This document shows positions 11,801 through 64,000 of a stretch of DNA of 64,000 nt, piece after piece. Within the stretch, counting starts at the first letter, position 1. The number at the start of each line of letters is the position of its first letter. Made by a program: the position numbers and the translations under genes. The notes beneath the pieces are model-generated. The model saw only the letters and a program-made list of their open reading frames with translations, had not been told where the DNA came from and ran no database searches. The stretch is from Takakia lepidozioides (lineage: Eukaryota > Plantae > Bryophyta): contig CM060731.1 of NCBI GenBank assembly GCA_030704615.1, positions 73,594,001-73,658,000 on the forward strand. The letters are read 5' to 3'.

Positions 11801-12655
11801 GAACCTATCCACCACCACCATGATTGCATCGAATCCTTTTGACAGCGGCATAGCAGTCATGAAATCCATCGAGATGCTTTCCCAAGTCCCCTCTGGAACG
11901 GGCAAGGGTTATAACAGCCCTGCTTGCTTTTTGTACTCGCTCCGGTTTTGTTGGCATGTGGTGCATGTCTTGACATACTCCTCTGCCTCCTCCCTCAGTT
12001 TGGGCCAGAAATACTCTTTCTTCAAGAGTGTCGCAGTGCGCTTGGCTCCGCCGTGGCCCGCAAGCGGGCTATCATGACATTATCTCAAGAGGCTATCTCT
12101 GATCCCTCCCTTAGGCACGTAGAGACACTTTTGCTTATACCGGAGCAGTCCATTTTGCAAATGGAACTGTTATTTAAACCCCATCCTCAGGTCCTGCATC
12201 ACGGACTTCGCCAGCTCATCCTTTCGGCAAGCCTTCCGGATCTTCCTTTGGAGCGCCGTCTCGCCCCTGTACACCAACATAAGCTACTGCTTTCTACTTA
12301 AAGCATCGGCCCACCACGTTGTCATGTCCCGGTTTGTACTGGATATCCACGTCGAACACCGCCAAAGTATCTTGCCACCTAAGTTGTTTGGGGACAACTT
12401 GGGCTGCGTGGCAAAATACTTCACCGTGACATTGTCCGTGAACACCTTCACTGGGTTGGAACCAACATAGTGGCGCCAAAGCTCAAGACAGTGCACCACC
12501 GCCTTCATCTCTTTCTCGTGCGTCGGCCACCGTCGCTCCACTTCATTCAGTTTCTTACTTTCGTAAGCCACTAGACGTCCATCTTGCATCAGTACACCCC
12601 CAATTGCGAAGTCCGACGCATCTGTATGAATCTCGAACGGACGATCGAACTCCAG

Positions 12656-14591
12656 GCCGGCAAACAGTAGGTGCACCCAGTATTCCATGTCTCCCTTTTG
12701 AAGCCTTACTTCAAAGATGAAGCGCGTCCGAATCGGCATCAAATGTTGCGTCCGCCACCTATGCTGTTGGATCATGAAAATGAACCTGAGTACGAGGTGG
12801 AGGCAATACTTAAGTCGATGAGGTTTAGGAACCGAGAAACGGAGTATCTCGTGGAAAGGGCTATCATCATGTGGAGGCATCTTGGGTGCGTGCCTCAGAA
12901 ATGGGAAACGCATCCGAGGCGGTTGCAGCTTTCGAAGGGCGACCACAAAAGCGGAAGAACGTTGATGGGGACATCACCTTGGAGCGTGGGGGAGGAAATG
13001 CATGCTTAGCCCGGTTTAGCTAGCTCAAGAATCCGATTGCAAAAACTTGTATTGTACAAAATTTTGTTATAAAGGAATGGGTTCCAAATATTGTGCGTCC
13101 TATTTGTGTTTGGAATGGTGATGCATGGTGTGGTTGGCTAGTGTGTAGAATGCATGCTAACTTACAAAAGTGGGAGAGGTTAATTGGGTTAATCGTGTGT
13201 TTGCGCAGTGCCGAAATCGGGTGACTCCCATCCAAGGGCAAGGAAACTTGCGCCTTCTTGGGAGTTCACGTGCTAGTGCGTACCTGGCGCGTGCGCGTAC
13301 TATAACTTTGCTACCGAGGGGGTTGCCTGTAGTGCGGGCTACCGCGGAAGCTACGTGCTTCCGTTCACGTACTATAATCGTGTAGCCTCGGGACGAAGTC
13401 GTAGTGCGGCTTCGGTGTGTTCCCGTACTCAGGCCAGCATTCCAAGGCGGACCCAATTGTAGTGATTGGGCGCACGGTTGGTTCAAGGTTATCTTCCTAG
13501 TCAAAGAGGGTTCCAAGTGAACCCTTGCTCAAGGTGATGCCAAAGCGGCATCATGAGCGATCGCAAGCAATGTTGTTGCAGTAATGCGATTCGATCCTCG
13601 GGAGGATCGTTCCTTGGCCTTGAAGTAGGCCAAGAAGAGTGCACTGGGAGGAGCTGGAGAGGCTCCATCCTTGGCTGTGGACTTGGAGGAAGTCGGCCGA
13701 ACTAGCTAGTGGAGAGTAGAGTCAAGTGTGGGGTTTGGTTCTTTGCCATGGGACCCATGGTACGGAACCAAACTCCTTGATGTGGGACGCCACAACTTGG
13801 ATGTTCGTTTCTATAAAATGGACAAGTCGATGAGGACATCGACTCCCTGTTGGTAGGGGTGTGTGTCGCGGCCCTTTGCCTGTGGGCAGGGAGGTCCGGA
13901 CACGAGTGGGGCTGCCCCTGTGGTGGGGGCAGTAGCAGCGATAGGTACGGGGGCTGAAGCACCCTTGAGTGAGTGCCCAAGGCACTCAAGGAGACGGAGG
14001 CGCTCACTAGGTGGAGCCCCGCACACCGGGTTGCGGTGGGGGTGGCTCCACAAGGGGTGGTGGTAGCTTAGTGGGACTTAGTGGGGTGGCATAGGACTCA
14101 CCATGGGGGTGGAGACCTCGTGTGGGAGTCGTGGGGAGTCTTTGGGACTCATCACGGTCCATAAGGGCCGTGGTGAGCGGGGCCAAGACTCACCGCGACT
14201 CACCACCGGGAATCGAGGGTCTTCGTGGTTGTTCGCCATAAAATGGCTGGCTGGTTGTGAAACCCCGCGGACAGCTACAGAAAAGTATATGTAGGGAGTA
14301 GTAACCCCAGAAACGGTGCAAGCCCGTTGGTGACCAAAACTAGTGAGTAAGCTAGCTGGCCCGAAAGCGACCAAAAGAGTGGGGAGCTGTTCCGACTGCC
14401 ATCTACTCAAGGGAATTCTCCTAGTCCCAATTAGGTGAGGGTTTTAGAGGGAAGCGAAGGGGACCGTTATGTCCCGGTGAGCAGCCGAATCTCCAAGTTG
14501 GCCCGGCGGCCAGGTTGGGAGTCAGGCGCGCGCATCAAAGCGAGAGTAACTATGACTTGAAGGGGAGTTTACCGAAGTGAGGTGCGCGACA
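12656..14591 (+). mobile_element. Inverted 3' part of a related chromovirus (integrase end + chromodomain, 3' UTR, longer LTR 13864-14591)
   Basis: HPVFHVSLLKPY...EYEVEAILK..R.R..EYLV chromodomain on +; sequence mirrors 9590-11120; the LTR starts TGTCGCGG at 13864, ends GCGCGACA at 14591 and has an extra ~400 bp internal segment. Confidence 0.85.
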
Positions 14592-26600: not shown

Positions 26601-28112
26601 AAGGCGTGACTCATGACTGTGGTTTTTAAGCAATCCTTGAAAATTCAAAATTTTCATGTTGAATTTATTGTTAATACTGCATATAATATAATCATCAATA
26701 TATTATTTCCATATTTATTAATCATTTAATATTATTGATCAAATGTCCAGATTTCATGTTTATGTCCATATTTACTTAAAACTGAGTTATATGTTTCTAT
26801 GTCTCCATGCTAGATATTTTTAAAGTGTTGGGTGGTTAACCAGACTCGCCCCATTTAACCACCGGTTCTGGCTCCCTAGGATCTTTTTTTAGCCTCTAAG
26901 GGGATTATAACTGGCCTTCTTCCAAATGCCAATGCTTGGTGGAACAAGACCACCGAGGATTCCCAAGGTGCAAGTTGTCCTTTTGTCTTCTTTTTGTCTT
27001 AAGTGTTTCATACTTAGCACCAAGGTAAGCTGCAACGTGCAATTGCATCTTTTATCATGGATATTGTTTGTTGATAACGACCAAACAAACTAAGCGCCTC
27101 TGTTACATAGTTCACTACTTTCTTATGCAAGTTAAGTCAGTCTACATATTTGACCTATATGGGAGTCTGTGTACGCTATGTACAAACAAATGTCAACAAA
27201 TGTCAATTGAATATGTCTTATGCAATGGAAACTGCTTTCAAATATATCACTAGTTAAGAAAATGATTGAGGATGAGGACAAATGTTTTAAATAATTTCTT
27301 ACAATATATAAGGACTTTGTCAAAGTGGCTCTAATTAGTTATGCCAACCTCGGCTTGGGTCTTTTCTCTCTTTTCTCTCTATATAACCTGGATCCATTTT
27401 GAAAAAATATGTATGTTCTTTATTACTCAGTGATTGCATCACAACCTCAGGTATTATTAACTAAGCTGCTCTTCTTCTCCCAATACTAGTCTCGCATGTA
27501 GTGTAAGATTGTACAACTCATCATATTTCACGATGTTGACATGCATTTTGATTTTGGACCGTCATCTTGTTACAATAACTAGAAGAATTTAAGTTTGGTT
27601 GTTTATATGCTTTTGTCTGTTCAACCTTTTTATGTTATTTGTCTCATCATTTGTTTTCTCAATGAAGGTGTTTTTCCTCATTCTTTGTAGACTATGCTAT
27701 GTTAGCTACCTCTGCCGATTATGTTATTGGGTACCTAGTTATGTATGCATATTTTTCACGCGGTACGTTGTTGTACCCATTGCTAGGGAATGGCTCTTGA
27801 CTACCTTGACGTTGTCTAAACTCATGGTCCCCAAAATACACAGTCGTGTTTTTCTCCTCGCTCTAAGGATATCTTAGAGCGGCTCTGAGATATTCACATT
27901 TGTTCAATCTAGGCTCCCTAGGGCCTTGCAACAACAACTAGGGCTTGTCCCTATGATTCAGTCCTTAGCACATGCACATGTCTTGAAGACGCAAATATAT
28001 ACATCAACAACTAGATGTAGCTCTTGTAGTCTGATTTTTCACCTATGTTGTTGGATACATGCAGTTCAATCGGAGTACTTGTTTTTTCATGTCAAATCAC
28101 CTTGGAGTTGCT

Positions 28113-31100
28113 ATGATGAACATTATATTGTCTCGACACTACATTGAAGCTTATTTTTTTGCATTACTAGTACTAAATGGGTTGTGTATTACAAGTAAGG
28201 TATATGGGGCCCATATTGATTTACGAGCTGAAGATGTTTTGCACATCAAAGTGAAGACCCTACATGATGCAGGAGTTAAAGGGGGTTTAACAGTGGTAAC
28301 CCGTCTGAATTCATCATTATTGGACACACCAACACCATCATATTTTTGGGGTGCTATACCAGCACATGCTGTAAATGTGATTTGCAAGAGGATCAACGGC
28401 GGGAATGATATCATCCCTATATCCATCACTGCCTATGGTGCAACAAAGAGACATACTCTTCAGGTACAGTTCAACTAATGTCAATATTAAATAATAACCA
28501 AGTAGCCAATATGGTATAATATCAGTTGTGGGTTCAAAACCACATAAGTGTGTTGGATGTCGTAAAAGTGTCCACCTTCCCATTGGAATTTGAAGGCAGT
28601 ATAAGGGCCGCTTTACACTAGGGCCCAAGCCCAAGACCAAGTGAGAATGGAGCATTCCCATTGGCAGAGGCCTGAAAATTGGGCCCAACGGCTTTACACT
28701 ACGGTCCGAGCCCAAGAAAATGGAAGTGGGTCATTTGCCTACATGGCACAAGTTTTGGCACCAACTTCTTGGGCTGGACCAAGAAAAAAAAACCCTCCTA
28801 CAATGGAGACCCAACTCTCAGCTCTTGGGCCCAAGAAGTTTGGTATTAAAATAGACTATTTTTGTGCGATCATGACTGTTTGATCATGACCGTTGAAGTT
28901 GGCCCAAGACCAGCCCAAGAGTTGTAGAAATTGGGCCCAGGATTTCTTGGGCTTGGGCTCTAGTGTAAAGCGGCCCTAAGTCATTTGGGTGAAGTAAGAC
29001 CATAAGTTATATTTGCCAACAAAGAGTCATTTTTTATTTTATTTTTCAACTATATTTAAATGGCCATATCCATATATGAGGGATAACCTCATATGATTAC
29101 ATCTTTGGATTTTGGATATCCTCATTTGTATCATTTTTGTTAATGGAATAAACAATTCAAATCTAGATAAGTCAATCAAGAGCAAAATAATAAATTATTT
29201 ACATATGTAATTAACGCACTCTTTTTAGTTTCAAGCCTTGTGATCTTCGATGGGCTTGTTTTGTGAAGCCTAGCATGAACATGAACATTGTCAAGATATA
29301 ATAAGGAGGATTTTGAGTATCCCACATATGTATGTACATGTAGGTATTATCTTCAAAAGGATGTGATTCATCTAGTAAACCACCAGAGGGAGTGGAGGCC
29401 GTCTTCTCTGATGAAGCAGGACATAAGAGCGTTGTGAGTCATTTTTTCCCAACCAACATATACGCTTACATCTAATTTATTAACATTATTGTATCCTCTT
29501 ATAATATATAGCTTTGTCATTAATATTGTTGATCGTCCACTATTTGTTGATCACATTTTATCAATCTATTTACAGAACTGGTAATGCACCCAAAAAGGTG
29601 AATGTCATTTTCGTCAATGAAACAAAATATGATGGACCTCTTGTTGTGCGTTGTTTCCAAACCCAACAATATCATTCATTTGACATCGTCTTTTTTTTAT
29701 ATCTCTATATTTTTAGTTTTTTTTTGTTTCGGCTTTCTCACATGAATTATTTTAAACTATAATTTCCTGTAATTACTAAACAATGTCTTTGTCTCAATGT
29801 TCTTTATGCAACTTTGTGTACTAGTTTGTAAATAAGATGAATGTATGGACATTTTGTCCAATTTTTATGTCGAAACCCTACATGTTACGCTCATGAATAT
29901 TTTGACAAATTTTCATTGTATTTAGTGGCATAAAAGTTGAGCAATTCATATTGTGTGTGTGTGTGTGTGTGTGTAGATATTACAATGATATACTTGAGCT
30001 CGTCTACTTGAGATATATGTGCTAGACGTTCATTTGTATACAAAAGTAATGCGTGAAGTACTAATGATTTTGTGTTTTTACACAGCTACTATGTCACAAA
30101 TCAAATCATACACACACATGCGGGTGTGCCATGCATATGATAGGCAAGAAAGCAAATGCCATCGTTAGTCAATATGAGGGTGGCAACTATATTCATGGTG
30201 TTAATCCTATGCACTCCATGACTGCGTCTATTGGAAATCGTAGGCTACTTGATGTACCAACATGTGTAACCACTGGAGCAACTGCGGGTACTATTTTCAC
30301 TAAGTTCATTGTAACTTGATAGGATAAAATATCAGTTAGCAAAATTTCCCACTTCCTTTCAAGGATTTTAAAATCCAAACAAGTCTCTTTGCAAAACACT
30401 ACAGCCTAGTATATTTAGTATGACCTTTGAACTAGAGTGGATAGCCTTGTGGTTGGGTCTTACCATATTTGTGCTTTGCTTGTACATAACCTAGGTGATC
30501 TAGGGTTCAAAGTGTCCATCTTTCATGCAGTAGTATTCCTTTGGGTTGAAAAGACAAGTGTTAAACTTATGCTTCATTAGGGAGGAGTCAGCCTGGTTAC
30601 TCCTACTAGATATATATATATATACACATGAACACAAACATATGTTGTTTTTGTAGGTTAGCACAATATCCTTCAAAGTTCACAATATATAAAGTCTCGT
30701 CAAACATGAAGTTGTTGGGGCATTTTACTCCAATATGCTTTTGAGAAGCAACTATCATCATGAAATATTAATATTGCGTAAGTTATATACTTTGGATCGT
30801 ACAATTCGGTGGGTTCTTGTAATTAGAGAGGTTTGGCCAACCACGTTGCTCCGGTTGCAGCCGTTGGAAGGTTTTTACCTCCCAATACAAAAGTAGTAGC
30901 ACTTCAGGGAGAAGTGACATCATACATGAGGAGAGAGAGAGAGAGGACTCTGGCCAAAGCTAGCTTAACTAAGAGCCCTTTCACCTTGCTTTTATTACCT
31001 CCTATAATAAAAGGCTCTATGAGATAAATGATAGTACCAAGCAACACTATAAATTAGACCTACTTCAGTATAAGTCTTCCTCTTAATAACAATATTGTCT

Positions 31101-32895
31101 TGTAGGTTATATTATAGTTTTAATATTTCTAGTACAGCTCTCAAACTCTATTCTAACATATTTATTTAATTTGTTTGTACTGTGAACAGCTGGGATAGCA
31201 GCTGGTGCAATAGTGATTTATAACATAGCTGCTTTCACGGCCTCTTGTATGATGCTTGGACCAATAGCCTTTCCAATATGTCTGGTGGCTGTCTTTGCTG
31301 CGTCTGGAATTGCATTTGCAGGACCGTTTATTATTGCAGCTTGCGCTGCTAGTTGCTTCCCAGGTATATTTGATGTTTTTTATTCCTTTGCATCCATCAA
31401 TATATATTCAACATCACTTTTCTATTGGAAATAGTGGAAAAAAAAAGAATTAACGAGATCGAATATTCACATGATGCATAGTAACAATATTAAAAATAAA
31501 ATAAGACTCTTGTGGTCGAAGCAGCGTAACTTATATGTCCCTCGAGCCTAAATGGCTGTTGAATTTTATAGTAGCTCTTCGAAGCACCATAATTTATGTC
31601 TGTTTTGGCAGTCCAGTCCAGTCTTCTTCCTCCTCCTCGCTAGGCCTCATCTTTCGCATTGCTTATCCTCAATGTGGTCAAGCTTTCATATCTAGAGCAT
31701 TTTCTTTCTAAGGATATTGTAATCAGGATGCATTATTTCTGCAGGTGACGCATTAGTTACATTGCCAACAGGATTGCAGAAGCCCATGTGGGAACTCACT
31801 GTTGGAGACCAAGTATGTCATCTACCCAAACACATGCAATTAATGTAACATGTAATTTATTGTATATATATATATTCTGAATCCAAACATGAAAATGTAT
31901 AGGTATAACATGGAAGTGTAAAACTTGTATCATCGGACTTGGAATTATTGCTGTTTTATTTGACTTGTAAGAAATATTTTGCTTTCAGGTAGCGGTGATG
32001 AAAGTAGATGGGCGCATGACATTTGATGAAGTCTACGCCTTTGGTCATAATGATGCTCACACTATGGCGTTCTTTGTGAAGCTCACTCTACAACCCGTTG
32101 GCGTCAGTGGTGATGACTATGTTGTGAAAACGCTTGAGCTTAGTGCTCGTCATTTTGCTCCCGTCTCTCCAGGTATTGATCACAAGAGTAGGTTGTCCAA
32201 GCTCATTGAAATTGTCTTTAAGATATTTAATCTTTGGTTTCAATGCTTGATGTTCCCATTCAAGCTTATTTCAATTGACATTATATTCCCAATTCCACAA
32301 ATTTGTCAAGATTGTTGAAGACTTTATGTCTTCTTCCAAATGCGCAAACTCCAATTACATTGAGAATGGCAAATCAGTGGGCTTTCTGCAATCAATCCCA
32401 TTTTTTTTTCATTGGCTTGTTGAATATGCTTCTTACTTTTTTAGTTTATTTTCCAGAGTAATTTTCTGCCCCCCAAGTTTTTCGAATGTAGCTCCACTTG
32501 AAAGACTATATGAATGATCACATGACTATATTAAGTCTAAGGGCAAGTAATCTTCCGTAAATTTTTGATAAAGATTAAGCATCCAATAGATGACCCAATT
32601 GTTAGGGTACAAGGCTGCCTCACAAATGGTCATGGGTTCGAAGCCACATAGGTATATGTTGGACGTCACCTATTACAGCCAACCCATCTATAAAATGGGG
32701 GTCGTTGGGTCAACTGGACACCTGATATGTAGATACTTAGGAACTGTCGAGTCAAGTTGGGGAGGTTTGAGTAACCATGTTGCCCTAATAGTTACGGCCA
32801 TTATAAGGTTTCTATCTTCCAAATGGAAGGCAGTAGCCCTTTGGGTTGACGGTGATATCATGTAGGTTTTGTTCAAGTTTTGGAAAGACCCCCCC

Positions 32896-32932
<37 letters not shown>

Positions 32933-34182
32933 GGCCACAACCATGAATTGACTTAGGCATGCATCTTCTTGATCAGCTCCTTATCTTGTCTTTAGTAAGT
33001 TATCTAGATCTATGCAGGTTCTTTCTTATTATTAAACTTGTTCACTAACTCATTAGTACGCACATTACTTGCACATTACAAACAAACATAGAATGTGTCA
33101 ATTATAATTAGTAACAATCATTATGTTATTTGTTTTTACCCAGGGATGAATGGCAAGAAGGTATACAAACGAGCTAAGGACATTCACATAGGCGACTACA
33201 TGTGGGTCAACTTAAATGGCGACAACACTGATCTTGAGCAGCTCATTGTGATAGGTTTGATTACAATCTCACATTAATTTTACCTTTAAATGCCTCAAGT
33301 ATGTGTTGTTGACAAATTTGGGCCACAAGAGGGCTACAAAATTTTATGTAATTACCTGCACCAAGACTTGAGGGTCACTTCTTCAAATATATCTGATATA
33401 TATATTAGGATGCTCACATATCTCTATATACAAAACCAAAAAAGTCTAGTCATTTTTCAAACAAGAATACTAAAATTGAGAGAGAAAATAACGGAACATT
33501 AATACGTGACAGATTCGGTGGTGACGGTCAAGGCGGGGTTGTACAACCCCTTCACATTGAATGGCAACATAGTTGTGGGCGATGTGGTGGCATCCGTGCA
33601 TAGCGATTGGTTCCTTGATGACATGTTTGACACTATTGCAATCACCCATTGGCTTCCTGCAACTTATCAGGTATATTGGTTTTAAGCTTTAATGTGTTCA
33701 TTGTGGATCAGAGAAGCATCTAGATCGTAAATTGATTTTCTTTTTCTTTTTCCATGGTTACACCTATCAAGAAATTCCCTAATTGTCCTAATTGTCTAGT
33801 GTGACCTCCCAAAATAAGCAAAATTATGGTATCTCTTGACCCCAAAGGGCTATGACCTTCCAATAGAAAGGTGAACAGCTTCAGCCCAGTATTGTCCAGT
33901 ACTTTAAACGTTCGGGCTTCATAAATCTTATTTTTGACTTTGGTTGTTTTGTTACATGAACAATGGCAGATGGTGTTGGCTCCAGTGCGGATGCTCTACC
34001 GTGTACTATCAAGAGATGCATACATCAAACTTTACCACTTTTTGGATATCCATTTGGATTTTCCCCAATTGGGCACTCTCTATGGTGGGAAGGTTGTGGC
34101 TACCATGGCTGCTTCAACACTATCCGCATTATTTGTTCGAAGCTTCTTCATTTTGAAAAAATATTCTTTAACGTTTAAATAG
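28113..34182 (+). CDS. Secreted Hedgehog-type Hint (Hog) domain precursor, 9 exons, ~516 aa (524 aa if ATG 28089 is used)
   Basis: Manual exons, all GT-AG and phase-compatible with no internal stop: 28113-28463, 29344-29433, 30086-30287, 31190-31363, 31745-31812, 31989-32172, 33144-33254, 33513-33670, 33970-34182. Hint motifs: S|CFPGDALVTLPTGLQKPMWELTVGDQV, FDEVYAFGH, LELSARHF, AKDIHIGDYMW, GLYNPFTLNGNIVVGDVVASVHS. SRR-like LAPVRMLY. N-terminal hydrophobic signal (YFFALLVLNGLCITSKVYG). Exons 4-9 are strongly supported; exons 1-3 are moderately supported. Confidence 0.85.
28605..28976. mobile_element. PIF/Harbinger (Tourist-like) MITE in intron 1 of the Hog gene
   Basis: ~32-bp TIR GGGCCGCTTTACACTAGGGCCCAAGCCCAAGA ... 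TCTTGGGCTTGGGCTCTAGTGTAAAGCGGCCC; TAA TSD on both sides. Confidence 0.9.
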
Positions 34183-42116: not shown

Positions 42117-43983
42117 TCATGACTCATACTGAATCCGAGCTGTGGTGAATCGAATCGAGACAGGTGATCCCCTTGGCACAAGAGTGACAACGACATTAGA
42201 ATAAGAGGTCTTTCCCAAGTTGTGCAATTTCATCCCCAGCGCCGCCCGCCATGTTTTGGCAGCACTAGCCTTCATGCCGGAATGTGGGACGTTACTGAAG
42301 GAACCAATAAACTCAGGGCAGCTAATGGAGGTCGATACGGTGGCTTGGTTGAAAAACACAAAGCCGTCAAAACGAGCCGGTTTGGTCCAATTCACCTGGA
42401 GTCCTTCGAGGATCAAAACTTCCTCTCCTGTTTTGTTGGCTGGGGGTCTGGGTACTCGAAAACTGAATGGTTCGCTTGAAAATGTATTGACAGTGGTTGA
42501 ATTGTTGCTGAGAGAGGGAGTAGCTGCTATCATGGCATCCACTTGATTAGGGGAAGTGGTCTTGGAGCATTGCTTGGCCGTGGCCACGGTGGATGTTTGG
42601 ACGGTGCCGCTAGTATTTCCATAATTGACCCAGGAATTACTGACATTCTGGTATGTGTACCTGGCATCAGAGATTGGTTAGTCATGACATAATGTAGAAG
42701 AATTGGAAGCTCTAGACAATCTATAAGGCTCTTTACGTCTAGGGAATTGGGAGATGCTACTGTAGGTGAGCTTTGTATCGTGGAGTTCATGAGAAGAGAT
42801 CATTCTCTAGTGCACATGTATGTGCCTCTGTTTGATCCGTTTATCAGATTTTAGATAGATTTCAAATGTCCAGAACTTACATCAAGTCATGTGTGCTGAG
42901 AGCTTGGGAAATATTCACAACAACCAAACTGGCATTCTCGTCGTAGAACAGGAACTGCGTGTTGAGGTAATCTGGATCCCGAATGTCCGAGCGGTTGCCT
43001 CCTGGAAGTGTTTTCCACACAGTCCACAAACGATCGATATTTGCATGGTGTGAAAAGAAAAGAGGATCTTGGGCGGCCGTGTTCAGCAGTCCCATATCTG
43101 CATATGGATTTATTCCATTTTCGTCAGTGCCGGCCCACATGTGTACTGGGCCATGGGGAGCAGATTCCAGGGTGCCCCCGCCAGTGCCTCCCGGATCCCC
43201 TAGCCTGTATGGCTGCCCGAAAAAGAGAGATGGAGTGGTGGAGCCGGTAACCAGTTGCGTATACATTAGATTGTTGTTTTGGGCCCTAAGCGTTGCAGGA
43301 TTTGAAGTGTTATCACATCCACCGCTGTAGTCGAGATCTAAGAGGTTGGGCGGCTGGCTGCACTGATTACGGTTTGGATCATACAGCGATGAAGCTGTGT
43401 TGTTGACTCCGTAGGTGGCATTGGCGTAGATATAAGGTAAGATGTTTCCATATGGTGGGTATGCTGACTGGTTGTCCCAGTTCCAGAATGGGAGCGCAAA
43501 GGTGTCGTCACCCAAGAGCTTTGCGAGGATTCGTTCATGGAAGTAAAGATAGAAACGGTGCCAGGGAAAGAAAATCCAGCTGTAGTGAACCTCCAGGGGA
43601 TAGTCAGAGTTGGAGAGACCAAATGCATCATCACAATAAGCACAGTGGAGGTTGGCTTGGTTAATCCATGACCTGGGGTCTGAGTCGGGTAGAGCTCTGA
43701 GGAGGGCATAGGCCTTTCTGTACTGAGCAACGTACGCATCGTCCACTAGATGAGCTGCCTTCCGCGTCCTCATTGGCAAACTGCTGCTGAAGTTGAACAC
43801 CTTGATGGTACCATTGTATGGAGGTGGGCAACATCCCTCCCAATTATCACAGTTAGTGAAATTTGGGGCTGGGATGGGAAGTCCATCCACTCTAGTTAGC
43901 AGAAGCAATGTGACAATGACAATAACTGCAAGAATGATGCTGCCAGGAACTGTGGGATGTGAACAGTGTCTGAGGTGCGCCAT
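42117..43983 (-). CDS. PPO: Polyphenol oxidase (tyrosinase family), secretory type, 2 exons, ~548 aa
   Basis: Exons 43983-42881 and 42660-42117 (GTAAGT...CAG, phase 2). CuA HCAYC...VHYSWIFFPWHR; CuB HGPVHMW...HANIDRLW; DWL-like LMYTYQNVSNSW; C-terminal EEVLILEG..RFDGF..EFIGSFSNVPH..VVVTLVPR; N-terminal hydrophobic signal rather than a transit peptide. Confidence 0.95.
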
Positions 43984-45114
43984 GCCTAACACAATTTCTA
44001 TGTTCTCTCACGTGCAGCTCCTGGAGAGCCTTTTGAGTTCGGGACGTGACCACTCTGTTCCCGCAGATGGGCGTGCTTGTCTCTCTCTCTCTCCAAAGCT
44101 CCCCTCTCAAAACTGCTGAACGCAAGTTTGAGGGCACTCTTTGACTGGATGATGGATACGTGACCGTCCCTGGGGGATCTCAATCTCAACCCGATCTGTG
44201 CCAATAGGGAAACTATTCATCGTGAAAAGTGTCGCTGCGAGTTCCGATGGCAAACGATTTCCTTCCCTGACGAGTATTAAGACCGTACATAATCCTCGTG
44301 TACTCGACAGATTGTTGGAGGCAAACGTTTAACCTATGTGAACTCTCGTGTGGAGTGTAAATAAACTGCTCTTTGCCATGATCTACAAGCCACAATCGTG
44401 AAGGCACGATGGAAATAGGAGAAACTTCTTATATGCACGATCAAAAGCTCAGTTTGACAGGTCTGCGACATTGATGACCAGCAACTAAGAAGACCTCGCA
44501 TCTGACTCTCACTTCAAATCCGAGGACGGAAATATAATTTAAATAACCCATTCTGAGTGTGCACTGTGCACTTGCAAGGCTGACTCTCCATGTAGACCTT
44601 CAATTTTGTTAATGGAATGTCAATGTGAATTATGGCTCGCCACCCTTCTTTATTACTTCAAATAGCGAAAATTTCGTATGTCCATACGTCGATTCTAATA
44701 GTTACTGCGTCTAGACTCTATAAGCGGCCGCCAAGCAACTTAATGAGAGCCGCCAAGCAGCAAACATTGCACTAGAGTACGTACTAGGTGAGGCAGTCAA
44801 TGCAAGAATGTCAATGCGAATCTGGGCTTTGATTACGTGCATCGGCACGTTATAACTTGTTCTACACAGACCAATGGGGAGAAGACCGGTAGGTGATCGA
44901 AGATCCTCGAGGCTTAAGTTGATTCTTGAAAGCATCTAGCAAACATATCTCGGGGTACTCCAATGAATGGGCAATCCCAACCCCGAGAGGGCTCACTAGC
45001 TACAAAGGACGAGACAGTTCTATATAGCAAGAGTCATCTCTCTCTACACATGGCTGTCAGTGAGGTCCCTTAGAAGGGAGGCACCAATTTCGTTTGCAAG
45101 TTCTACCTAGGGAC

Positions 45115-55768: not shown

Positions 55769-58700
55769 CTAGGATTGCACTGCCAGCCTTTGAAGATGCT
55801 CCACAAACACTTGCAAGCTGACGTCATCAGTGAAAATGATGTCCCCTCCTGGGGCAGGCACATTGGCTGAGTTGTAGGTTGCTGAAGGGTTCAATCTTGC
55901 AAGCAAGAAACGTGCCTGTGAACCATGCTGGTCACAAACAACTAATCTAGGCACTGGAAAACGTTCCATAATGATCCCTTGAGCATCAGTCTGTGGCACC
56001 TTCAGCAGCTGAGCAAAAGCCTCGTGTTCTGGTTGGTTTTGATAGCCTGCCATCCGCCACTGGGCAATTGTCATGCCATGGAAAATGACCACGCTGAAGT
56101 AAGCATCCAGCAATAAGATCCGGTCAGCTGCAATCGATGCCACATCCAGCAGTGCCGGCTCAGGAGGGGCATTGAAAGAATATGAGAGAAGGGATGGTTG
56201 AAGCATAACAAGTGAATTTGTTACATTTTCTCGATACAAGACCATGCGAAAGTATGCCGTTTCATCAGGGCTGTTGTTGAACACTTGTACAAACTGTGAG
56301 CGCCGGAGATTGAACATAAACTGCGGATAGATAGCAAAATTTGGAGCAAAACTGAATGAACTCATGTCGTCTTTTCGGTAGTCCCCAAATCTTGATGCCA
56401 GACGAATAAGCGATCGATCCAGCCAGCGTGTTGCATCAAACTCTTCCTCTGTCTCCATCTTGTGTGAAGCTAGACGGGCCATTGTCACAGCAGCAGCTTC
56501 TTGGTCGAACCCAGCAACAAGCTCCTCGGTGCTCGAGGCCCCATCCACCCACCTCCGTGTGACAGTTGTTGCACGCATCCGTGTCTGGCCACCACTGTGT
56601 TGATACAGAGTCAGGAACTGGAGGAAAAATTGCTGCCCTATTGCTGCAGGAGGGCCAGCTTGAGCAGTAGGATTAACTTCATAAAACACAGTCAACGTCG
56701 TACTCCTGTCCAACCCACTCAGTTTCCAAGCACTAGTGCCTCCTTGACCAATAACTGTATCTGAACAGGAAGACCCTTTCTTGTCTAGGGACGCACAAGG
56801 GCCAATTGCTCCCTGAATTTTGACCTCCTTTGAGCAATTTACTTCAAAGATGCCATTGAAAGAAAGATCCAGGGCATGGTTTCCTGATTCAAATACACGC
56901 TTGAACGAGTCCTTGAACACTGAATGCCCAAAACTCTCAGCCAGCACAATTAGACCACCTGTTTTCTCAATCGCCACCTTCATTTCTGCAATTCCAACCT
57001 GCAACAAATTTCTGTCTATTAGCGTCTTTGTAACTGAAGATAAGCACTGAAAAACAAACGGTCTCAGAATGGTCTATGCGGCCACCTCCATCCAATTCTC
57101 TCTCTGTCTGCCCCCATCCAAAGCACTCTCTTTCAACATGATTGCAGGCCTCCCATCTCTGCCCTTGCCTGGAAAAGTGGTGGACTATCAGTCAAGCATT
57201 ACTCTATCACATACTCTGCTTGCTGGAGATTCTCATCTCGGGTGTTGGTAAGGGCAACAAGTAACAGCAAGTCCACATTAATTGTCCCTGACAAGCAAGA
57301 TGATAAAGCAAACACAACATTGCTTACAGCCAACTGCTGAGCTGCTAAGTTAGTGATTAACTGCACGCCTGGATGTCCTGTGTACAGCCTACCAACTCTA
57401 TGGCAAAAGGCCTGCCTAACTTTGGCTTTGGAAAACTCAAGCCATGTCTGCCTGACTCTCCATAATATCACCTAGCTCAGACGACATCACCATCTCTAAC
57501 ACGTTTCACAAAAGCGTAATAATTCGACCATTCTTCATTCCAACACATGACTGTACGTACACTTTGCAACCACAGAAGGACCTCACTTCTTGACCAAAAA
57601 ACAAAGTTGCCTGAAACTTTCAAATGTTTACCCATATCTCCAACACCTTGTATCCCAGAATGACCCCCCAACCGGCTGGAAAGGAACAAGCCACACAACA
57701 TCCTTTCCACACGCAGAAAAAACGCCTGAGGGGAACCAAATTCCTTTCTCTATGCTCTTTCCCCTCTTCAATGAAAGAAAATCATTCGAGTCTCTTACAG
57801 CAGGACGCAAACCTGATCTAGTGAGCACGCAAAGAGATCCAGCACATGTCCCTGGTTCACCAACTGTTTCGCAAGCCCTTCGTAGAACTTGACTGCCTTA
57901 TGGTAGTGAGGGACAGCATCTTTGGCAAGATCTTTGTGTGACCGAATCGGGTCAGACAGATCTTTAGACACAATCGTCCCCGATCCTTCTGTACAGGGAC
58001 CTCCTACGAATGCCATGATCCGAGCTCCAGTTCCAGGCACACATGCCCCCAACAATCCTGCCGCCACAGTGAGGGCCGTCCCCGTACACCGAGCTGCTCT
58101 TTGGTCAGGAGGAAAGGGCCAAGCATCTCTCTGCAGCTCGTCCAACAAAGATGTGAGGGTAAATTCGCAACTCGACGCTGGCAGTAAAAATCGATTGACA
58201 CTGCTGGCAGGGATCCCCTCACCATGGCCCGCAACCACCCCAGCATTTTGGGGAACCCCTCTTTGTACTACTCCTCCCACAACACGATTCACGAGTCCTA
58301 ACTGCTCAAGAATCTGTTCTTTAGTTACATCTTTAGATCCCCGAAACACATATGATTTCGGGCACTCCGAAAACCCTAATTCATGCACATGGACCTGGGC
58401 CCCGTAGGTGATCAATCCAACCATCGCATTCTCTGGCACCAAACTGATCGCCTGCGTCAGAGACGCCTTCAAATACCCTAGCTCCTCCTCTATGAGACAT
58501 GTGTCCAGCACGAACAGGAACACTGGAGGTGACCCCGGCTCCCCCGCAAGAGTATACTCCACAGTCGTACACTGCGGAAAAAGCTCGCCTGGCTGATTGT
58601 CCTGCGATATGGAGGCGTAGCTCGCCGGGAAATGGTTGCGCTGGTAACAAAAAGGACAGGTCCAGATCTTGGCTTGAAAATCAACACGACAGAAGGGGTT

Positions 58701-58892
58701 GAGCAGGGAGCGGCAAGACTTGCACCGTAGAGGTGAGTAGGGCAGCACAGACACCCCAGGCGCTGGATGCAGAGGGGTAACTATAGCTGCCAACGGCACA
58801 ACGCACTTGCTCGCTTCCACTCGCGTGCTTGGCCATACATTCCACGGCATGCGCACTCCATTCACCGCCTCTACTTCTGCAAATTCCGCCAT
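55769..58892 (-). CDS. SEC23: COPII coat protein SEC23, 2 exons, 769 aa
   Basis: Exons 58892-57813 and 56998-55769 (GT-AG, phase 0, ..SLDQ|VGIAEMK..). [10 protein letters not shown], Zn finger [73 protein letters not shown]. Confidence 0.97.
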
Positions 58893-58962
58893 TGCCAGGC
58901 CCTCTTCAGGGTCCCGGGAGAGATCCCCCCTCTCTGTCTCTCTCGCCCCTCTCTCCCCCTCC

Positions 58963-58998
<36 letters not shown>

Positions 58999-59828
58999 TC
59001 CTCGCGAAGAGAACGCGCAGGCCACGCTGCATGGAAGAAGCAGCCTTTGACAATCGCGGGCCGGGCCGGGTCGGGCCTTCCCATTTCAGCCCGGCCCGCA
59101 GTAGCACCGGTCAACGTCGATGCTCGGAAGCACCGACCGGCCCAGCTGTGTAAACAGATGAATGTCGTCTACTCAAACGTCTTGGATGAACGATAACCTA
59201 GATTTGGACGGCCGGCAATTGTATGGATGCAAAAGAATGGGTGGATGAATGAAGGCGGTGGGTAATTAGGCTGCAGACTGTGTCAGTGCAATAACTGAAA
59301 AGTGTAACTCATGCACAGCACTGACTTGAGGCTTGACCTCTACTTACACCGTTCATTCCTTCAACTTGCTCATTGCCTTCATTTTCCCTGGCTCAGTATG
59401 AATGTAAGCCTGACAGTGGAACCCTAAGTTTGAGTCCCTCGTAGTGACAAAAAAGAAATAAAAAGGTGGGGTGGGTTCTGAAGGAGAAATGGTGGTTTTC
59501 CCTTTTTTAATTTCTTTATTTTCCATTAGAAGGGGGATGGAAGCCCCTGAACTTTATATCAGAGGGACAAAAGTCCCCGGGGGGGTACATAGAGGAAATA
59601 ATAACCTCTGCAACAGTGCCATGGAGGCTGATTTGGGAATCGAAATTAAATGAAGAGAGATCAAGGAAACGTGTAAGGGACGAAGGAGGAAGTAGGAAGA
59701 ACTAAAAGTTGCCCCTCTTCATTCTGTAGGGATGGGCTTTTTATTTTTTATTTTTTTAAAGGGAAACACCTGGGAGCGTTTGATTTCCTTTTCTGAAAAA
59801 CCTACGGTGTCTCCAATTTACCAGTTTA

Positions 59829-61717: not shown

Positions 61718-64000
61718 TGTCACGGACATAGCCCAGAGGAACTTACCAGGAATAAATACCAAAAGTTACCAAGCTACCATGTTACCGGAAGTTATCATGA
61801 CTTACCATGATTTATCATGATTTACCATGATCTACCATGATTTATCATTACTTACCAAGTTATCAAGAATTTATCAAATTACCAAGAGTAACTTGGGAAA
61901 CTGCTCAGGAAGCTTCTTTTGGAGGAAACTTCTCCATCAAGATACCTCATTTGTTTAAGGAAGCTTCTCCATCAAGAAACCTTTGTTTAATCTTAGAAAC
62001 TTCTCGAGCAAGCAACCTCCATAAGGGAAGCTTCTTAGGGAAGCTTCTTAGTAGCCAGTATATATAGGAGGCGAGACTGGACACTCTTCAGTCTCGCCAA
62101 CACCAGTTCAAGCTACTCTTGTTTCCCAGTTCCCAGTACCCTGTTTTCAGTATCTGGTAATCCAGTCCAGTTTCCAGCATTCCAATATTCAAGTCGTGTT
62201 CCAATATCTTGTACCCTTGTTCATTGTTATAAAGATCGTCTTGATTCATATTTACTCATCGTGCATACGGCCACGCCGACCTTGACTTCTTGCCTAGTTT
62301 TATATCTCTAGTCTGATCTCTTGTTTGTGTTCAGTCATGTTTTCGTCATTGACAGTTTGGCGAGACTAAAGTTTGTTCCTTAGTTAGTTAAGATGGAAGG
62401 CACATTTGCGGAAATGGTCGCCACATTGCAGAGTCTTCAGCTCCAGATGCAAGAACTTCATGCCTCTACTGCCCAACTACAAGTTGATCAGTCTCAAGAT
62501 CTTGGCAACGCTCTCAACAATTTGCAACAACAAATTTCAGAGTTGAAGGAGACGAACAATGGATCTTCAACCTTACGAGTCCCTACTACAATAAATCCTA
62601 CTGCAACGGTTCCTCCAAATCTTCAACAGATTACAAGGGAACCAAACGTCAGCATGCCCGAAAAATTTGATAGGACGAGATCAAGATTTCGTGGTTTTGT
62701 TCAACAAGTACGATTGTTCCTACGACTACATCCACAACGTTACCCTGATGAAGGTATTCAAGTAGGATTTGTGGGCATCATTCTATCCGGCACTACCCTA
62801 TCTTGATTTGCACCGCTATTAGAGAAAAATTTGCATTTACTATACAATTTTGAAGCGTTCATGTCCGAGTGCACTGCAACGTTTGGAGGGAATGATAAAG
62901 AGAGAGTTGCAGAGACAAAGATGCGAAATCCTCGACAAGGAGCACGTCCAGCTTCCGTTTATGCTGCCGAATTTCGACAACTTGCGTGCGACCTCGATTG
63001 GAATGAGAAGAGTCTCATTAGTCAGTTTCGATGTGGCCTAAAAGAGGATGTAAAATATTTGTTGCTGACAATGTCAAACGTGAGTACATTGAGCGAATTC
63101 ATCACCCAAGTCATTGCATGCGATAATCGTTTGTTTGAACGACGTCAAGAGAAGCGATATGGATGGTCGACGACGCACCATGCCGCTGCTACTACGGCAT
63201 CAAATACAACGATCCATCAGACATCCGGTAATGATCATATGCAGATTGATGCTGTCCGATTCAAGCCATTGACGCCACAAGAAAAACAAATACGGCGCTC
63301 GAATGGATTATGTCTTTATTGCGGAGAAGATGATCACATAGCATTAAACTGTCCCAACAAGAGAAGATTCAAAGCTCGGGGCACAACTCAAGTGTTCGAT
63401 ACGAGGAGGTCGGAAAACGAAGATGTCCAGTCGTAGTAGGGACCATGCGGCTGGACATCCCAAATTCCTCACCAAAAAAAGGTCTTTTTCTATCTCCAGA
63501 CCCTGTACCTTGTTTCACAGTTCCAGTAAAGATCAGGATGCAAAATCAAGATATCTCCGTAGAAGCACTTTTGGACTCGGGCACTTCAGCGTGTTTTCTT
63601 GACAAAGACTTTGCGATTGATGCAGCTTTTTTCATCATCTTGAAACCAGCAAATCTCCAAGTGAATATGCTATCCATGTCCACCTATGACGATGTAGAGA
63701 TCATAAAAGAGATTTAGGAAGCACTGAAGAGCGACCAATTTGCTACGACACTACGAAGTCAACTAAATTGACCCCGAGACAACCCACATATTACAAACGA
63801 CTTCGAATTCAAAGATGACTTACTTTATTTCAAGTGACTTCTCTATGTACCTCCAGGACCTACACGACTTCAAATTCTTCAAACATGTCATGATCTTCCG
63901 GCTGCGGGACATTTCGGCTTCAACAAAATAATGGAATTGATATCCAGGGACTATTGGTGGCCGCAGATGTGGAAACTCGTGAAAGAATTTATAAAATCTT
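61718..64000 (+). mobile_element. Ty3/Gypsy element (Tcn1-like gag), 5' LTR 61718-62354, internally deleted, runs off the right edge
   Basis: LTR TGTCA...TGACA containing ttaccatga repeats and TATATA; gag 62393-63436 (PEKFD..RFRGF, RQGARPASVYAAEFRQL, MQID, CLYCGEDDHIALNC; one stop); protease ALLDSGT; then directly the integrase Zn finger (CHDLPAAGHFGFNK..YWWPQM), so RT/RNase H are missing. Confidence 0.9.

Follow-up and report, generated by a model that had tools for sequence, protein, structure and literature searches.

Hog genes outside the Hedgehog family have been described from Physcomitrella and Selaginella. In the encoded proteins, which have a signal peptide, the upstream region is conserved and motif J is changed, and a sterol-like modification was proposed for them (Burglin, 2008; PMC2362128). 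These non-Hedgehog (non-Hh) Hog proteins were still termed 'of unknown function' in 2026 (PMC13353863). In the literature searched, cholesterol ligation by Hedgehog is the sole reaction that has been tested for a Hog domain of this type, and we found neither a functional study of a plant Hog protein nor a link between Hog and sphingolipids. Here we describe a nine-exon Hog gene in a 64,000-nucleotide stretch of the Takakia lepidozioides genome (the window: contig CM060731.1 of assembly GCA_030704615.1, positions 73,594,001 to 73,658,000 of the forward strand; coordinates below count from its first letter). The gene is a new member of the moss/Selaginella non-Hh Hog family rather than the first of a new one. 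Its Hint domain is nearer to Hedgehog than to inteins, the cysteine of motif J is replaced and motif K forms a PxR helix, while the conserved upstream region of the described proteins pPp_Hog and pSl_Hog is recovered by a family profile in exons 1 (E 2e-19) and 2. The supplement to the 2008 study contains the same N-terminal domain and RRLL motif (PMC2362128), and its sequences share that domain with our homologs P0008 and P0030.

The locus holds a genuine, spliced and ancient gene. A sequence-only reading of the window had proposed nine exons joined in frame, and the model holds at 1551 nucleotides (516 codons and a stop), with eight GT-AG introns of consistent phase and a GC content of 40-49% in the exons vs 28-39% in the introns. 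The exons are as follows.

28113-28463, plus strand: exon 1, predicted signal peptide (residues 1 to about 32, ending at 28208) and first half of the pro-domain; family profile match, E 2e-19
29344-29433, plus strand: exon 2, pro-domain with a conserved GC motif; family profile match
30086-30287, plus strand: exon 3, end of the pro-domain, linker, RRLL (30239-30250) and start of the cargo (30251-30287)
31190-31363, plus strand: exon 4, rest of the 67-residue, four-cysteine hydrophobic cargo (to 31353), with serine at position -1, and Hint Cys1 (31354-31356)
31745-31812, plus strand: exon 5, Hint motif A region; weak Pfam Hint match
31989-32172, plus strand: exon 6, His46 (32046-32048; Asp46 in Hedgehog), then S-x-x-H72 (32142-32153)
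33144-33254, plus strand: exon 7, Hint core
33513-33670, plus strand: exon 8, end of Hint with Ser142, Val143 (33596-33598; cysteine in Hedgehog), His144 and Ser145, and start of a segment resembling the sterol-recognition region (SRR)
33970-34182, plus strand: exon 9, amphipathic helix containing PxR (33976-33990), predicted hydrophobic tail (about 34093-34155), basic residues and stop

Contigs of run X5, which bears the same species label, comes from another accession, is about 2% different and is RNA by guess, cover the exons, not unique intron sequence, and skip introns 1, 2, 4, 6, 7 and 8 exactly. The junctions of introns 3 and 5 fall between X5 contigs; they are independently supported by homologs of clubmoss and fern. 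Two genes of Diphasiastrum and one of Adiantum share all eight intron positions with their phases, and Ceratodon shares five. The DNA run X1 is colinear with the locus. With the RNA label of X5 guessed, the gene is probably expressed. The start codon is not fixed among in-frame ATGs at 28059, 28089, 28113 and 28116, of which homolog alignment favours 28113 or 28116. A coding-looking stretch behind an AG in intron 2 (29576-29680) was rejected, being skipped by an RNA contig and lacking a counterpart in the homolog intron maps. The description of the gene as 'domesticated' finds no support, because intron positions are common to moss, clubmoss and fern and there are green-algal relatives (Coccomyxa and Volvox). 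No second Hog copy was found in the window. Intron 1 holds a miniature inverted-repeat transposable element (28605-28976) with 33-nucleotide terminal inverted repeats starting GGGCC and TAA on both flanks; it is Tourist/PIF-Harbinger-like in look, and its copy depth in the DNA run is very high.

The closest relatives found are the Diphasiastrum complanatum hypothetical proteins KAJ7545086, KAJ7298589 and O6H91_02G101000, with 53-77% identity per conserved exon and the same eight introns in the two genes mapped. The cysteine spacing of their cargo, 26/10-14/20, is also alike; the cargo itself is about 30% identical, and position 143 is threonine there and valine in Takakia. The model for KAJ7298589 (L003:9827-10000) seems to start late, an upstream in-frame ATG giving a signal peptide that matches exon 1. 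Amino-acid identity of the Takakia gene is 64-66% to Diphasiastrum vs 45-52% to Ceratodon, Marchantia and Adiantum, and four-fold sites are 51-53% identical (unsaturated) vs 25-35% (saturated for Ceratodon). If the host is a moss, this closeness could possibly reflect slow evolution, hidden paralogy or plant-to-plant transfer. The named matches include no seed plant, from homolog searches that were word-based and weak, with seed-plant absence itself not tested. Intronless copies with the same pro-domain (L001, L002 and L020-L025; 40% GC) occur in aquatic eukaryotes and group with green-plant Hog in the tree; a RING gene adjoins the Hog copy in L001 and L002.

Searches were run exon by exon, and homologs P0013, P0001 and P0195 took the place of the full-length protein. 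The Hint domain that had been read from the letters is matched by Pfam Hint (PF01079) on exon 8 (E 3.5e-5) and weakly on exon 5 (E 0.057), and full-length homologs exceed the Pfam cut-off with E 1e-17 to 1e-26. Exon 8 as a query returned 312 relatives among 1.84 billion representatives; alone, it had no sequence match in the PDB. The model of P0013 has the Hedgehog Hint domain as its best match (6TYY, E 1.6e-13, template modelling (TM) score on the target 0.93; Drosophila 1AT0, 0.94), with inteins lower, and the profile comparison also puts Hedgehog first. Judged by this modelled homolog, the C-terminal half adopts a Hint fold of the Hedgehog type. Its first residue, Cys1, is Cys270 of the precursor, and the T-x-x-H motif is supplied by S-A-R-H (Ser69/His72). 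Histidine at Hint position 46 aligns on Hedgehog Asp46; a Hedgehog bearing the D46H change stays active and takes a broader set of sterols (PMC9163320). In place of SCYA the protein has S-V-H-S, with valine for Cys143. Beyond the end of Hint lies an amphipathic PxR helix (LAPVR at 33976) and then a hydrophobic tail predicted from hydropathy only. Among family matches, Cys1 is conserved in 52/52, His46 in 74/78, Ser/Thr69 in 87/89, His72 in 87/89, His144 in 148/159 and Ser145 in 158/159, and Ser142 is near-invariant. Position 143 is valine, alanine, serine, cysteine or threonine, and is non-nucleophilic (valine or alanine) in 89/159. From these alignments, the active site is conserved and differs from that of Hedgehog at the second step.

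The upstream half has a conserved layout: a candidate signal peptide, a 135-residue pro-domain, RRLL and the 67-residue four-cysteine hydrophobic peptide that directly precedes the Hog module. A hydrophobic stretch lies at residues 9-33, again from hydropathy only. The gene is intact and spliced, and its product is probably a secreted Hog precursor, as had been suggested. The four-cysteine domain of about 135 residues after the signal peptide is common to homologs from Diphasiastrum, Adiantum, Selaginella, Ceratodon, Marchantia paleacea, Coccomyxa and Volvox, and is also present in aquatic eukaryote sequences. Its model is confident (predicted local distance difference test (pLDDT) 84). Among solved and Atlas structures the fold had no match (best Z 4.2, Foldseek E >0.09, Atlas TM <=0.46), which is not proof of a new fold, and no BRICHOS or lectin structure was conspicuous in the comparison. 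Neither Pfam nor fold searches gave any match, Hedge included, for the N-terminal part, in agreement with the earlier view that the cargo is unrelated to Hedge. RRLL occupies residues 199-202, and RRxL is the site of the plant site-1 protease SBT6.1/S1P (PMC13082318); an RRLL-like motif lies 50-74 residues upstream of Cys1 in most homologs. Homolog P0083 combines the pro-domain and an RRxL-like site with a polar 19-residue four-cysteine cargo.

The cargo, as defined here, runs for 67 residues from RRLL to Ser269, with one charged residue, a grand average of hydropathy (GRAVY) of 1.6 and a cysteine spacing of 26/10/20. Equivalent segments in homologs are 50-74 residues long, with four cysteines spaced 17-26, 7-14 and 16-20. 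Spacing and models together would suit a helical hairpin with nested disulfides. Between Diphasiastrum paralogs the cargo is 24-34% identical vs 79-85% for the half of the pro-domain tested and 81-88% for Hint, with the cysteine spacing kept. By this sequence comparison the family is a fixed carrier with fast-changing cargo, and the fast divergence points to a role in defence or recognition. No relevant match to named peptide families, bacteriocins included, was found for the cargo in NCBIfam or Pfam, and the Atlas yielded generic helical hairpins only. The same Hog type carries other cargos, namely chitin-binding, B-lectin, cysteine-rich and proline-rich ones; because unrelated extracellular cargos ride on one Hog type, it may act as an anchoring device. 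Proteins P0035, P0045, P0024 and P0033, from moss, Selaginella and other sources, fuse this subtype to chitin-binding, B-lectin, Stig1/CPL1-like and proline-rich cargos.

We give an even chance to a mechanism, read from sequence and from analogy, in which Cys1-dependent self-cleavage, transfer of a lipid to the C-terminus of the cargo and removal of the pro-domain by a subtilase yield a lipid-anchored hydrophobic hairpin peptide. The signal peptide would direct the precursor into the endoplasmic reticulum, where the C-terminal helices would hold the Hog module at the membrane. Cys270, aided by Ser69 and His72, would then convert the Ser269-Cys270 bond to a thioester, a first step that the fold and the conserved residues suggest to be like that of the Hedgehog C-terminal domain (HhC). 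His46 would activate a membrane lipid bound by the helices that resemble the SRR, and the activated lipid would attack the thioester, freeing the Hog module and remaining on the C-terminus of the N-terminal part. A site-1-type subtilase, to go by the motif, would cut after RRLL and remove the 135-residue pro-domain, probably a chaperone or mask. The product would be a 67-residue, two-disulfide hydrophobic helical hairpin, lipid-anchored and acting in or on the membrane outside the cell. That the lipid is a sterol is possible but leans to the unlikely side; a sphingoid base or other amino lipid is a still less probable candidate.

Several observations weigh against this mechanism. Residue -1 is serine instead of glycine. 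Hedgehog depends on Cys143 to process itself, and also to be cleaved with dithiothreitol; Cys143 forms a branched thioester, and C143A is dead (PMC12054796). Of the HPR and HWY motifs that mark the Hedgehog SRR (PMC7906309), the HPR histidine is glutamine (QPR) and HWY is absent from exon 9. The homolog cargo is modelled poorly, as two helices with pLDDT of about 50, and the disulfide pairing comes from spacing only. The Volvox homologs are without RRLL, and no non-Hh plant Hog has been assayed to date (PMC13353863). In the Volvox tandem copies P0200 and P0201, a small cysteine-rich insert lies ahead of the cargo. Valine for Cys143, QPR for HPR and the missing HWY weaken the analogy with Hedgehog cholesterol transfer drawn from the letters.

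A lead on the lipid comes from bacteria. A scan of prokaryotic genomes with the family alignment found 12 loci in 10 genomes, mostly of Geminicoccaceae (L008-L019), encoding precursors in which a signal peptide is followed by a helical pro-domain unlike that of plants, a cysteine-rich cargo, Hog and a membrane tail. They match Pfam Hint at E of about 1e-30 and have His46 and an S-x-H-S-D-W-F-L-D motif in common with plants, while the plant-type pro-domain is absent from the bacterial loci. The bacterial sequences form their own clade and are not nested among plants; since the tree has no outgroup, we claim no direction of transfer. Across L008-L019, L039 and L050, Geminicoccaceae Hog precursors with cysteine-rich cargos are sometimes in tandem or in two copies, and we found no description of these proteins in the literature searched. 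In 9/10 genomes the next gene after a Hog gene, overlapping it or no more than about 40 bases away, encodes an alpha-oxoamine synthase and/or a short-chain dehydrogenase/reductase (SDR) lies there; one of these nine neighbourhoods is frameshifted and one is weak. The synthase has Sphingobacterium serine palmitoyltransferase (SPT) as its best PDB match, nearly tied with KBL, and falls below every NCBIfam cut-off. A match of the SDR to 3-ketodihydrosphingosine reductase (KDSR) is the best in the PDB for L012 (107 vs 94 bits) and third for L010. An alpha-oxoamine synthase of the SPT type and a KDSR-type reductase together make long-chain amino alcohols. As most bacteria are not known to make sterols, these neighbours suggest that the subtype may attach a sphingoid base. 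More broadly, the Hog subtype with His46 and His144-Ser145, found in non-seed plants, algae and Geminicoccaceae, could use a sphingoid long-chain base, and not a sterol, as the partner to which the cargo is joined, a proposal that we rate as unlikely and advance tentatively. The bond would be an amide formed through the free amine, a 'peptide ceramide', and an amine nucleophile might not need Cys143. The linkage of predicted enzymes comes from one bacterial family, perhaps from a single event, and plants may differ, so it may serve as a lead only.

Self-cleavage could also end with water. In that case the thioester would be hydrolysed, and Hint and RRLL cleavage would release an unmodified 67-residue hydrophobic peptide. 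The loss of Cys143, the SRR histidine and HWY, all needed for cholesterol transfer by Hedgehog, fits such an outcome, as does a cargo hydrophobic enough to need no anchor. However, simple hydrolysis would not need the His46 and the Q-x4-P-x-R helix that are kept from bacteria to plants, and soluble lectin cargos carry the Hog module too; we regard hydrolysis alone as unlikely. Somewhat more doubtful is a silent Hint domain, where the precursor would stay whole on its membrane tether apart from the cut at RRLL. This would agree with the inactivity of C143A Hedgehog and with the valine or alanine at position 143 in over half of the family matches, but Cys1, His46 and His72 are near-invariant in plants, algae and bacteria, and the conserved His144/Ser145 may replace Cys143. 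Improbable in our view is head-to-tail cyclisation, in which the RRLL cut exposes a new N-terminal amine whose attack on the thioester closes the hydrophobic peptide into a ring braced by disulfides. Nested disulfides would place the ends side by side, with four residues before the first cysteine and three after the last, and the ends are short in many homologs. Yet the thioester would have to await a Golgi protease, lectin and bacterial cargos are without such a cut site beside the cargo, and the cargo lacks any bacteriocin family match. An artefactual model or pseudogene, for which two junctions unseen in reads and the guessed label of X5 might speak, is largely refuted and very improbable, given that the frame is open, that six junctions are spliced and all eight intron positions conserved, and that the listed X5 differences are silent (4/8) or conservative.

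The Takakia gene offers a confirmed, probably expressed plant example with a defined candidate product of 67 residues and predictable mass, so that what an ancestral Hog attaches can be asked directly. The family naturally has the D46H swap and is without Cys143, and so tests the Hedgehog mechanism; the genes beside its bacterial relatives point to a specific alternative substrate, and sphingoid ligation, if true, would be a new protein lipidation. The variable cargo may represent a class of non-seed plant peptides, acting on membranes or as signals, that has so far been overlooked.

Elsewhere in the window, the neighbours are a polyphenol oxidase, a Sec23/Sec24-family gene in two long open reading frames, and retrotransposon RNase H and gag pieces. 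The first 22 kb are GC-rich with strong skews, probably retroelements. The neighbouring stretches lie at:

42877-43992, minus strand
55769-59114, minus strand
12284-12946, minus strand
62831-63436, plus strand

Compared with known systems, the Takakia protein shares with Hedgehog HhC (Drosophila 1AT0, the D46H mutant 6TYY and human SHH) the Hint fold, Cys1, T/S-x-x-H, a candidate base at position 46, the PxR helix and a probable secretory precursor. It is not a Hedgehog, departing from one at the Hedge domain, at Cys143 and in the SRR: there is no Hedge domain, Asp46 is histidine, Cys143 is valine with His-Ser added at 144-145, the SRR histidine is glutamine and HWY is missing, and there are a C-terminal hydrophobic tail and an internal RRLL. 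Inteins and bacterial intein-like domains have the Hint fold and Cys1 in common with it, but the Takakia protein has no terminal His-Asn, no +1 nucleophile and no C-extein, and the homolog model matches intein structures less well; its Hint domain ends in S-V-H-S followed by membrane helices, and no splicing is expected. Geminicoccaceae Hog proteins resemble it in His46, the S-x-H-S-D-W-F-L-D motif, a Q..PxR helix, a hydrophobic tail with a basic end and a cysteine-rich cargo right before Cys1, although their helical pro-domain is unrelated, their polar cargo has 6-8 cysteines, they form a separate clade and SPT-like/KDSR-like genes lie downstream. Precursors of the RALF/PROSCOOP type likewise have a signal peptide, a pro-region and RRxL before a cysteine-containing peptide (PMC13082318), a likeness in layout, whereas the Takakia precursor has a folded pro-domain, a very hydrophobic peptide and a C-terminus that would be made by Hint. 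The moss and Selaginella proteins pPp_Hog and pSl_Hog share the candidate signal peptide, the cysteine-containing N-terminal domain, an RRLL-like motif, a cysteine-bearing hydrophobic segment and the altered motif J; the 2008 description drew no line between the pro-domain, the protease site and the variable cargo, and made no tests (PMC2362128). From these moss and Selaginella Hog proteins the Takakia gene differs in sequence (27-63% identity per exon to Ceratodon) and in its longer cargo.

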